From: Anthoceros angustus
Lineage: Eukaryota; Plantae; Anthocerotophyta
Reading direction: 5' to 3'
Length of the DNA stretch: 64,000 bases
Assembly (NCBI GenBank): GCA_010909165.1
Contig: MU008211.1
Span: 186,001 to 250,000 of the forward strand
Shown: piece after piece, positions 57,964-63,400 of the stretch
Position numbering within the stretch: the stretch's first letter is position 1
Layout: the number at the start of each line of letters is the position of its first letter
Notes under the pieces: generated by a model
Told to the model about the DNA's origin: nothing
What the model saw: only the letters and a program-made list of their open reading frames with translations
Database searches by the model: none
Program-made: the position numbers and the translations under genes

Positions 57964-60900
57964 CTAGCCGTGAGCCCAAACGTGGATTGCATGATTTAGT
58001 TGTGTAGTCATGGTATTTAAGCTCTCATGCAGCCATTTTACAAATTGATGGGAAGCTTCTTCATCGGTCATATCAAGTAAAAGTGATTCTCTCACATACA
58101 TGACATCTTCAGGTTTAGAAATTTCAGGGATTCCACTAGATATCATCTGGATATTTATATCATTGATTTCAATGTGTGACTTTCATAAATCTCATCTCTT
58201 CTTCTTTATAAAGTCCCAAACGCACTTCTGCAAATCTCTAAGATCACATGTATGTACTAAATAACTATATTTTTAAAATATATAAATTAAACTGTATGAT
58301 TTTGATAAATTTGCACATACCAATGCCAATAGATTTAATATCAAACTTGCACTCTTTCTAATTTTGTTGAAAGCTTCTGAGCACATAAACTCAAATATTT
58401 TAAATCTTCTATCCTCAATTCCTCCCATGAGATATGCATAATCCGGTGTAAACTATCAAACCACCACTCTCATCTTAGCCGAACCATGACACAAGAGCAT
58501 GATTGATGAAAACACAATAATATTTATCGTACCACAAATCGAGCACGTTCCCGTTTGATGCCAAACTTAGATTTGAAATGACCTAAGATATGGCCGAAGT
58601 CGATATCTGAATGTATTTTGGTTAAGAAATTTCAAGTTCATGAGTCAATTATGATGTAAGACTACAATAGAGGCCAAACCTGTGGGAAAACATGGCTAGA
58701 TGGATACGAAAGTATTCGCCATTCTTTTTCAGCATTATATTATCATTGTGTCTATCGCCAATGCCCAATATGCATGTGGCCACACAATAAGCTGAGCATG
58801 ACTTCATGAAGTTCTCTACAGCTTCCGCATATTTGTTTCCTAATAAGTTGCCGATTAAATTGATCAATCGTGACCGAACCCAAACACAGTTATAACTTAT
58901 GAAATGTGTATGTAATACATACCAGACTTATTATGTGCCATAAGCCAATTCGCAAGGGTATCCTCTTTAAAGGCAGCTGTTCCCCCTCCGGCTTCCTAAT
59001 TAAGTTCATCCTTCTACATGCTACATAAATGTAGATCTTTTCTAGAAATGTGAAACATGTACTCCAATACAACACTCACTTATGTGGAAGGGAAATCAAT
59101 AATACGAGATTCCTTAATTCTTACCTTACAAATATTAGAGAGAGTTTCAGCATCTTGAACAACTTCCAACATTCCACTATTTGAGCTTGTCGCTATGCAT
59201 CGATAAATATTCATTTTCATCTCCATACCGTTTTGAGACCATATCTGCTTGTATACAAAGTCAAAATAATCATCTAAAAATAATCAAATATATTTAATTT
59301 TATTCAAATATATTTAATGGATGAATACCTACAATTGCACATATTCACTTGAAAGTAATTTCAGAGATTACCTTCTCCATAATAGAGAGAATTTGAAGTG
59401 CTAAAATATCTTGACGAAGATCATCCCCCGTTTTAAACAATATATAAACAATATCATTCTCTTTGCTTTGCAAAGAAACTTTTTGTTCATGTTCAAGAAC
59501 TCTTTTGAATGCTAACCATAAAGGAACTTTTTTAGAATCCATAAATCGACATTGCTCCAAATCGAGTCCACAAACAATCAATCTGAGAAAATAGGTAGTT
59601 TCATCAAAGTCAGACTGTAAATAATACAATTATAAATACTGAAAATAATTATTTATAAAAAATAAATTATAAGATAATGAAAAACTAACATACTCAGGGT
59701 CAATTGGTAAAGAAATGGGTTTGTCAAACTTTATAGCTTCTAATGTGGCAAACATTATACTCAAACGCTCCTCTCGTTGTTTTAGGTGCCTTATAGTCTC
59801 TGCTAGCTCAATCAAGGTGGTCACCATTTTCTCTTGTCTTCGTAATGCATCTTGAAATTGTGGACTGCAATGCTTGTTGAATAGTGTCAAAGCATGTTCA
59901 AAGACTGAATGAAAATAAACATCTTGGAAACGAGCCTGCATAACAAGTTTCTTCACTAAATGTTTGGCTCTAATGCCCACCAAAGAACCATTCACATATT
60001 TTGGTAGAAAACAAAATCAAAAAACCAATTTGCCAGCTTACTAATGTATAAATTGTTTCAATTACCTTACATCCTAATTAGATTTACATATTTATTTTGT
60101 TTTTATTTTAGCAAATCAATAGTTTTTTGAATATTTATATTTAGTTTTATTTTTTAAGATATATATAATTATATTTGTACTGCATTGCTCATTATTTTGG
60201 GACATTGCTCACTTTATTTTATTATAATTTTATACGTATTTATATGATATATACATAATTATATAAATTATTATATTACTTTGAGATGCCAATGAAGTTG
60301 TTGCCCTATTGACCAATTCGATATCCCCCTTTTGAGAAGAAAATGTAACAAAGCAGAATAAAAATTTGGTTCATATTGTAATGTCTGCAAAATGAAGTTT
60401 CATCTATGAAAGGGAAAACTACATTCTATATGTTATGAAAGTTACATATTGATCAAACTTATGCATATTAGGATAATAACGATTGATTTTCATAGAAAAT
60501 CAAGTACCTGGACTAGTTGTATGAGTATCATTGAAATCTCTTGGTTTGATAGAGCATCTAAATGTTGTATGGCATAGTTTCTTATCAAAAGGTCTCCAAC
60601 ACGAGGTTGCAATAGCTGGACACACAATCAATCAATATCTTATTATTACTTGCAAATCATAATTTCTTTGAAAAATTTAGATAAATATTATTATTACTAA
60701 GTTTAGAATGAAGTAATGCAACACAATTCAGTATTCATCATTAGATTAAATTAATAAATAATAAATAATTATTTCTATAAGATTTTACTTGCAATGCTTG
60801 AAAAGGTGATGGAGGCTCCCAAACTTGCAATAATCTGTCCAATAAGTTTTTAGACACTAACCTCATCGAATCAGCTTGAGACATATATTTTTCACAAACT

Positions 60901-63400
60901 CACCTATGCATCTCTAATACTTTTTCAGTTTTATTCCAATTAATGGTTTGTAAGAACTTGGGAAGCGCTTGAGGGTTTTTAATAATAGTATGTCTATATC
61001 TCCACATCATTCTTTTTTGTGCTTTTGTGGGAATAGAAATAGCATCTAATCATGATAGCAGGTTTAGTTTTTATATCTTGTATTCTCATCCTATTTATGA
61101 AAACTTATATGGAAGCCATGAATTTGGTAATTAGTACATGTTGGATCAGCCCAATAATTGATAAAAACTATAGGGCAACCATGAATGTTTCAAATTTACT
61201 ATCATTTTTATCTAATTAATAGCATATATATATTTTTAGTTCAAAAGTATTATTATTTGTGATAATTAAATAAAAAATTTATGTTGCTTCTGGATAAAAA
61301 GTATGAAAAATACCATGGTCGCTAAATAGTTTTTCCATGATATGCAATTGTTCTGAAGTTGGCTCAACTACCTTCTTTGTAGAACCTAGAATATGTGGCA
61401 TGACGTTTGTTTTTGTACAATAAGTTCATATTCTTACTAATCTCATACAAGATATCCATATGATCTCATAAATGGGTACATGAGTAATACACACAACATT
61501 ATATAAGATGCATAGTATTATCCGTAAAGTTGGAAAAGCAAGCAATAGATACCTACTTTGGTTTTTCTCATTAACCTCTTCTTGCAATTGTTTTCTTTCT
61601 TTATCAATTGAAGAATTAAAGAGAGTCTCAAGTTGTATGCTCAATGCTCCTGCATAGTTTTGGGATGTGTTTTCACCTATTGTTCCTATTAGACATCAAA
61701 GAGTCAACATTCAAATAGCACAGCATGTGATATGGATCACCTCTTCACATTTAATCCAAAATTACTAGCCATGTGATATTTGTATGAGTATACCAAAGTA
61801 TGTGACTCACAAAATGTGAAGTATAAATGATTGTGAAAATCACTACCACGAATAACAGATCACCTGGAGAATATAATGGCTCTTTATTCCATAATCGCAA
61901 ACATGTCTTTTTCATGTCCAATACACCCGCCATATCCAAGAAATGAAAGTTTGCCCATCCAAAAAGATCACATGAAATCTCATCCTCTCTTTCATGACGT
62001 CCTATATATAGTGAAAAATTTATGCATGCTACCTTAAATTTAAAAACAAAATTAGCAAATAATTAAGGCATGAGCCTAGAGATACAAATAAACCCAATTC
62101 CCTCAAGAGTACAAGGACAAAATAAAAAATGATGGTGACCTGAGGAAGATTTACTAAAAAGATAGGAATTGTTATACTCTCATTCCATCTTGGATTTATA
62201 CAACTGAATGTGAAACTAGTCGAATGCTCAAAACTTGGGATAAGTCTTTCAGCTCCATGATATCTTGGTTGAAAAATTAAGATAAATGACTCTTCCTATG
62301 TAAATACTTGATTCTTCCTATGGTGATGATATATCACTCAAATTTACTATGACTATCTAGGATACAAAACAACCACTATGTTGAAGAAAGATGGTACTTC
62401 TTCATCTAAAATTAAGAGTTCAGGTCTTATCCAACATTCATAAATTTGAACATGTAAATACACTCTACGAAAATGAGTTGCGTCATTCTGAAATGTGACA
62501 TTTATCCAAAAATTCAAATCAATGTGTGTCTTTTGATACTATGTATATCATGTTGGAGTTTTTAGTATAATAGCAGAGATCACATGCATCCCTCTAAAGT
62601 TCTCATGTGTATTATTCGGTACAAAAATTTGACACCGTAACATACCATAATTGTGTTGCAGCTTGATAAAATTAATTTATCCTGAATTTTTTTTAAATAT
62701 TAGTCTCTCATTTCGAGAGGCAACACCTAGATGATGTGTCATGCGTCTACAACACATCAATGCATCCTACTGCTTGTTTGTTTATTATCATAATAAAATT
62801 GTTTGTTACTATTTTGAAGTTATACATAGTTTATAAATGCATGTCATGAGGTTCAAGAGTTCATACTATCACCTTGCTATATATCATATACAATACCTCA
62901 TCCATAGATGATTGTTTCAAATTTGCAAATGGTATTTGAATAAGTTGTAACATAACTAATCTATTGTCTCTAGTGCACTTTTGGACATACCTGCATTGAT
63001 TGCAACATGTTATTATGCTTGTGCTTTAATTTTTATGGGTTAAGTGCAATGCAATCATTGCTCCATTAAGTCATGAATGTATTTCACGTCTTTTATTGCA
63101 TATTGCAATAGGACACTTCTATGAAAAGTAAGCTTCACTTAACAAGTTATCTCCTATTTTGTTTTGAGCTTCATGTGTTGAATTCAAATAAAGCGAAATC
63201 CCATTCTTACAAAATGCAACACAAAAATCAGTTTTTGTTTATATTTTAGCATCAAAGCTTTCATTTTGGAGTTCTCAATGAATACCAATTTGAGACTGAA
63301 TCCACTTGAATGACTTCCTATTAGTCCTTTGTCTAACTTCATAAACTTGTGGTGAAGATGATTTGAATTGAATAAGCGATTCGGATCCTACAAAGCTTGA
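57964..63400 (-). CDS. Class I-like phosphatidylinositol 3-kinase catalytic subunit (p110-type: C2, helical PIK, kinase; possible RBD end), multi-exon, 5' end unresolved
   Basis: GT-AG exons splice in frame: 57964-58146, 58321-58452, 58533-58606, 58708-58839, 58923-58995, 59125-59244, 59372-59582, 59694-59935, 60280-60384, 60508-60615, 60789-60834, 60904-61045, ~61313-61385, ~61553-61677, ~61864-62000, ~62140-62267. Motifs [82 protein letters not shown]. Confidence 0.88.

Follow-up and report, generated by a model that had tools for sequence, protein, structure and literature searches.

To our knowledge, plant textbooks and reviews treat VPS34 as the sole phosphoinositide 3-kinase (PI3K) of plants and hold that plants make no phosphatidylinositol 3,4,5-trisphosphate (PIP3). 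VPS34 carries a DFGYILGRDPKP-type activation loop and accepts only phosphatidylinositol (PI) as substrate. In animals and amoebae, the PIP3 signal is produced by class I-type enzymes. Two basic boxes in the activation loop are linked to the use of phosphatidylinositol 4,5-bisphosphate, PI(4,5)P2, and class II PI3Ks are recognized by C-terminal PX and C2 domains and a KRDR-type loop. Described here is a 64,000-nucleotide stretch of the Anthoceros angustus genome (contig MU008211.1 of assembly GCA_010909165.1, positions 186,001 to 250,000; “the window” below, with positions counted from its first letter). The minus strand near its end probably holds a native class I-type PI3K gene of the green lineage, with a catalytic core of C2, helical, and kinase domains.

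In plants, Brown and Auger (2011; PMC3024228) find no PI3K class other than class III. Philippon et al. (2015, BMC Evol Biol 15:226; PMC4617754) report a single class I catalytic subunit from Selaginella moellendorffii, rule out contamination through its plant neighbours, and leave open the choice between retention and transfer. The Selaginella gene and the window gene both encode a class I-type catalytic subunit, both come from land plants without seeds, and both have plant genes as neighbours. The Selaginella report bears out a caveat of the original prediction, a model's reading of the window from its letters, that homologues from non-seed plants might already be known. No later report of a plant class I PI3K was found in the literature searched.

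The p110 enzymes of metazoans and amoebozoans (alpha, beta, gamma, and delta; Dictyostelium PI3K1/2) share with the window gene the kinase, helical, and C2 domains and the activation loop with two basic boxes. In both, the protein ends after helix k-alpha-12, and the p110s are the best matches in the PDB. Unlike p110, the part within the window has no adaptor-binding domain and no demonstrable Ras-binding domain (RBD), the N-terminus lying beyond the window. VPS34 belongs to the same superfamily and has the same C2-helical-kinase order; its activation loop differs.

A further comparison is with the PH-domain PI3Ks of chlorophytes, which resemble the window gene in the FKSKFG.KRER loop, the C-terminal TTQLN.AIH..AH, and the C2-helical-kinase order. 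They differ in being intron-poor and in their N-terminal PH domain, accompanied in some by an RBD. Neither domain is detectable in the window or in L001, an independently assembled contig that carries a homologue of the gene. Identity between the window gene and the chlorophyte enzymes is only ~30–60% outside the C-lobe. Since the P-loop exon has no match above ~60% identity, the gene has no close relative among deposited proteins.

Gene Model

The gene was searched exon by exon through its window coordinates, and the domain scans and tree placements are likewise exon-wise. Open pieces were taken from the stop-to-stop translation of the minus strand in the AT-rich part of the window. Seventeen open exon pieces extend from the stop codon at 57964–57966 up to ~62469. 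GT-AG sites with compatible phases are present at all 16 junctions, among them 58708|58606, which joins the catalytic-loop exon to the DFG exon in frame. In gene order, the pieces encode a C2 domain (on weak evidence), then the helical (PIK) domain, and last the whole of the kinase domain. They are listed from upstream to downstream.

62362–62469, minus strand: C2-start exon (...NIVVVLY); tblastx match to L001 2233–2340, 42% identity, E 5e-7
62140–62295, minus strand: C2 exon RYHGAERL...NPRWNE...LVNLP, proximal copy of a repeat; Pfam PI3K_C2 16.5 bits; 49% identity to L001
61864–62032, minus strand: second conserved C2 exon (GWANFHFLD...); 42% identity to L001
61314–61685, minus strand: two predicted exons of the C2-to-helical stretch (~61557–61685 and 61314–61385); GT-AG sites and frame only
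60280–61045, minus strand: four helical (PIK) exons (~60904–61045, 60789–60861, 60508–60615, and 60280–60384); Pfam PI3Ka on three
59694–59935, minus strand: end of the helical domain and linker to the kinase; L001 counterpart, GT-AG sites and phase
59372–59582, minus strand: P-loop and ATP-binding Lys exon; motifs, Pfam, PDB, and HMMER scan
59125–59244, minus strand: kinase N-lobe and hinge exon; Pfam PI3_PI4_kinase 28 bits; L001 counterpart
58923–58995, minus strand: short kinase exon; 76% identity to L001
58708–58839, minus strand: catalytic-loop exon; Pfam PI3_PI4_kinase 56 bits; PDB p110gamma, E 1.6e-13
58533–58606, minus strand: DFG and activation-loop exon; 89% identity to L001
58321–58452, minus strand: kinase C-lobe exon (...LILNLLAL); 71% amino acid identity to L001
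57964–58146, minus strand: last exon, starting MISSGIPE..., with the C-terminal membrane-binding helix region and the stop codon; matches the C-terminal ends of PI3KC2alpha and p110alpha in the PDB

The two exons within 61314–61685 are the weakest part of the model, with boundaries that have no homology support. The YHGAE exon at 62140–62295 matches a profile of green-algal N-terminal sequences at E 0.003.

Domains and Catalytic Motifs

The residues required for phosphotransfer are intact: the ATP-binding Lys, DRHNDN, and DFG (IDFGHILG). The activation loop contains both basic boxes of class I enzymes (K-S-K and KRER). The C-terminal helix is of the class I type, and a stop codon stands straight after ...HVWAHG, with no PX or C2 extension C-terminal of the kinase domain. 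Three kinase exons, those of the catalytic loop, the P-loop, and the C-terminus, find p110 gamma, alpha, delta, and beta as well as PI3KC2alpha in the PDB (E 1e-13 to 1e-6). The exon fragments also tile the kinase domain of the relative P0087 without gaps, over positions 403–699 of the aligned part. A MAFFT alignment of the fragments to one full-length relative smeared them and was left unused as a search profile.

The exon-wise Pfam scan places PI3_PI4_kinase above its cut-off on two exons, with four more exons matching weakly, and PI3Ka at 33, 34.9, and 35.4 bits on three exons, each above the 31-bit cut-off. The intact kinase domain claimed in the original prediction is therefore present in its catalytic Lys, DRHNDN, DFG, loop, and C-terminal helix, and the claimed helical domain is confirmed by the PI3Ka matches. 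All of the motifs that it quoted are found on the minus strand, with YHGAE...PRWNE...LVNLP at 62140–62295 and GWANFHFLD...LRLW at 61864–62032. The C2 domain stands in part. Its motifs are present, and three of its exons have conserved counterparts in L001 and line up with the C2 domain of the reference proteins, but Pfam PI3K_C2 scores 16.5 bits on the YHGAE exon, below the 26.4-bit cut-off.

Class Assignment

A filter-free HMMER scan of the P-loop exon against 1.84 billion representatives returns a best identity of 59%. The best full-length matches come from diverse protists (Diphylleia, Dictyostelium, Anaeramoeba, Andalucia, Rhodelphis, Capsaspora, and others); they are class I-like PI3Ks, most of them with the domain order RBD-C2-PIK-kinase. 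No plant VPS34 is found among the best 150 matches of this exon. Plant VPS34 is plentiful in the searched library and would have been the first match of a VPS34-like exon. All 190 retrieved relatives that span the activation loop are of the DFGH[FI]LG.FKSKFG.KRER type, one being class II-like (SRDR) and none VPS34-type.

Class II is contradicted by the stop after ...HVWAHG, which leaves no PX or C2 domain, by a KRER rather than a KRDR loop, and by the summed exon scores, in which the class II-like reference P0404 ranks 108th of 113. Class III is contradicted by the class I-type loop and by best matches in the class I/II cluster, in the PDB and the HMMER scan alike. By the classification of Philippon et al. 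(2015), its sequence thus places the gene in the class I/II cluster of PI3Ks, with a class I-type loop and C-terminus. The loop type and the PDB and HMMER matches agree with the original prediction in setting it apart from VPS34. The narrower label of that prediction, p110-type, fits the loop and the C-terminus; the RBD candidate that formed part of it scores at chance level, as described next.

Candidate Ras-Binding Domain

An open piece upstream of the conserved exons had been proposed as the end of an RBD.

62864–63025, minus strand: open piece proposed as an RBD-end exon; not supported

A profile of the RBD was built from six relatives, and 25 upstream pieces were tested against it. The piece at 62864–63025 is the top match, yet its score is 3.4 bits, a value reached by 28 of 2000 shuffles of that piece (1.4%). 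It has no Pfam match and no counterpart in L001, and the proposed exon is accordingly not supported. The green-algal N-terminal profile, comprising the PH domain with or without an RBD, finds no upstream exon in 62296–64000 of the window or in 1–2500 of L001, neither of which shows the true 5′ end.

Conservation and Selection

The homologous contig L001 is 7.4 kb long, was assembled independently from another public run, and was reached through the best short match. Other short matches (P0002, P0003, P0004, P0007, and P0067) were set aside, as their contigs are metagenomic or from compact protist genomes, not plants. Each of the 15 conserved exon pieces recurs in L001, with order and spacing unchanged and amino acid identities of 35–89%. 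At the nucleotide level, the two loci resemble each other only in exon cores, up to the predicted splice sites; the introns are not conserved.

Over 292 gapless codons, the proportion of nonsynonymous differences (pN) between the window and L001 is 0.21 and that of synonymous differences (pS) is 0.75, which is saturated. The low pN together with the saturated pS means that selection has maintained the gene in two plant-type genomes that diverged long ago. It has been under purifying selection since its split from the L001 homologue.

Ancestry

Searching with the C-lobe of P0087, the best-scoring relative, identifies nearest kin that include two chlorophyte proteins: P0359 of Pycnococcus provasolii, annotated as a PI(4,5)P2 3-kinase catalytic subunit, and P0410 of Crustomastix stigmatica. 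Many marine-metagenome proteins are also among these kin, and most of them have a PH domain. The tree of 113 non-redundant references puts Pycnococcus and Crustomastix in a 10-member clade with a support of 1.0. Exons of the window and of L001 were added to this tree as separate rows, and in 11 of 11 cases an exon of the window pairs as sister with its counterpart in L001.

Single-exon placements are inconsistent, so summed exon scores with a control were used instead. Of the 113 references, the three that score highest with the window and the four that score highest with L001 are all members of the chlorophyte clade. The metazoan-type reference, from Capsaspora, ranks 60th. In the control, a member of the chlorophyte clade is the best match for none of the 103 other references. 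Another archaeplastid, Rhodelphis, has an RBD-bearing class I-like relative. Taken together, the summed scores, the control, and Rhodelphis make vertical descent in the green lineage, accompanied by many losses, more likely than contamination or a recent transfer. The existence of a chlorophyte class I-like clade is at odds with the common view that class I and class II PI3Ks are missing from Archaeplastida.

The chlorophyte clade (P0087, P0299–P0306, and P0310) is common in marine metagenomes, where a single 90% cluster comprises 171 sequences.

Genomic Setting

The gene is native to a land-plant nuclear genome. Guanine plus cytosine (GC) content is 0.5–0.6 over the first 50 kb of the window, and a gene of a land-plant marker family lies on the same contig, 17 kb from the PI3K gene.

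38225–41137, minus strand: intronless PPR gene with E and DYW domains, 970 aa; Pfam; land-plant marker

The best named matches of the PPR protein are PPR proteins of lycophytes and ferns at 32–45% identity, and the best overall match, at 59%, is a Logan protein. In L001, a degenerate PLS-type PPR pseudogene with in-frame stops occupies 850–1372, less than 1 kb upstream of the PI3K homologue, so both loci are near PPR sequences. GC content in L001 drops from 0.48 to 0.30 at the 5′ side of the gene. The homologue shows the same drop, and low GC is a property of the gene and not the sign of a misjoin. The green-algal affinity, the exon structure conserved in a second plant contig, and the purifying selection support retention of the gene, which the original prediction had put beside acquisition, over contamination.

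One DNA run, from this organism or a very near one, matches 57900–62591 at 95–99% identity; the runs of two other organisms contributed nothing of use. Relative to the window, the matching run has at least 48 deletions of one or two bases; among 12 listed, 11 are single bases at homopolymers. These indels, at 60150–61205 and other sites in 57900–62591, are artefacts of sequencing chemistry, and the frames of the window are the intact ones.

Two further features of the window were recorded. Within the PPR-DYW gene, 39106–40123 is a 297-nt tandem repeat of 3.4 copies at 89% identity; its unit of 99 residues points to a recent internal duplication of PPR repeat blocks. Across 1–31000, the plus strand is pyrimidine-rich, with a GC skew of about −0.2, an AT skew of −0.1 to −0.3, and a GC content of 0.5–0.56, and Pfam finds nothing in the open reading frames that were tested in this part, up to 432 aa long.

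Opposing Evidence and Alternative Explanations

Several observations weigh against reading the locus as a native class I-type PI3K gene of green-lineage descent. The first is composition, as GC is 0.30 from 56 kb to the window end, making the gene far AT-richer than the neighbouring 50 kb. The second concerns the trees. Single-exon pairs scatter among the references, as expected for 24–65 residues, and in a bootstrap over exons, only 77% (window) and 76% (L001) of replicates have their best reference within the chlorophyte clade; the reference set contains no class III or PI4K sequences. Third, substrate specificity is suggested by the sequence of the loop only, and one possible RNA run yielded no contigs for the locus. 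The remaining points concern the 5′ region. No start codon or N-terminal exon was found within the window, and the most upstream conserved exon, 62362–62469, is without a start codon, which means that at least one exon lies further upstream. The region is also duplicated: 62043–62410 recurs at 63631–64000 with 99.5% identity over ~370 nt.

63631–64000, minus strand: distal repeat copy, truncated at the end of the window, with a second YHGAE exon and a partial second C2-start exon

The copies are in direct orientation, 1588–1590 nt apart, and differ by one substitution and one 2-nt indel. An independent contig spans 61356–62591 and supports the proximal arrangement; the DNA run gave no independent contig over 62675–63600. 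Either a tandem duplication took place recently or the repeat is an artefact of assembly. The gene extends past the window end, and its N-terminus lies outside the window or within the duplicated 5′ region.

These 5′ features suggest that the locus could be a relic, its 5′ part disrupted by the 1.59-kb duplication of the first C2 exons and no functional kinase expressed. The near-identical repeat doubles two coding exons, and the missing start codon and the empty RNA run point the same way. However, 17 of 17 exon pieces are open, with catalytic motifs intact and splice sites compatible. The proximal copy adjoins the remainder of the gene, an independent contig spans 61356–62591, and the repeat itself could come from assembly. 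A relic is therefore unlikely, though it is the strongest of the alternatives.

Slightly less likely again is an ancient horizontal transfer, in which a class I-like PI3K of a protist entered the land-plant lineage and later gained introns and plant neighbours. Selaginella was the sole case reported from Archaeplastida (PMC4617754), the composition of the gene is sharply unlike its flanks, and amoebozoans and excavates are among the single-exon best matches. Set against this, the summed exon scores specifically favour the chlorophyte clade, which the control shows not to be a general attractor, and Rhodelphis, an archaeplastid, also has a class I-like PI3K. The 15 exon pieces are moreover common to a homologue that has diverged to synonymous saturation.

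That protist DNA was misassembled onto a plant contig is highly improbable: GC falls from ~0.55 to 0.30 near 50–56 kb and the named best matches are protists, but no database protein exceeds ~60% identity in the P-loop exon, the independent short-read contig L001, from another organism, repeats both the gene and its GC step and has a PPR pseudogene of plant type less than 1 kb away, and the PI3K region is present in the DNA run of the organism.

Implications

For a native class I-type gene, the probable course of events would be vertical descent from a PI3K of a green-lineage ancestor, with loss in most plants, seed plants included. The enzyme would be expected to phosphorylate the 3-position of PI(4,5)P2, PI4P, or both at membranes. 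Membrane binding may proceed through the C2 domain and the C-terminal helix, by analogy with p110. Regulation might fall to the N-terminal part beyond the visible region, which in the algal relatives is a PH domain with or without an RBD. A further proposal, offered tentatively and with less confidence than the identity of the gene, is that seed-free land plants keep by vertical descent a working PI(4,5)P2 3-kinase and hence PIP3 or PI(3,4)P2 signalling, a pathway that seed plants would have lost. The part in motile sperm that the original prediction suggested is speculative, as is PIP3 signalling itself.

The kind of gene described here was known but has gone nearly unnoticed, the Selaginella report of 2015 having had little follow-up since. 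New in the present analysis are at least two further plant-type genomes that carry the gene with an exon structure in common, and purifying selection acting on it with all catalytic residues intact. Kinship with green algae would turn what might have been an odd contaminant or transfer into an ancestral green-lineage gene lost in seed plants. With a defined gene in hand, the question of PIP3 in land plants becomes directly testable.

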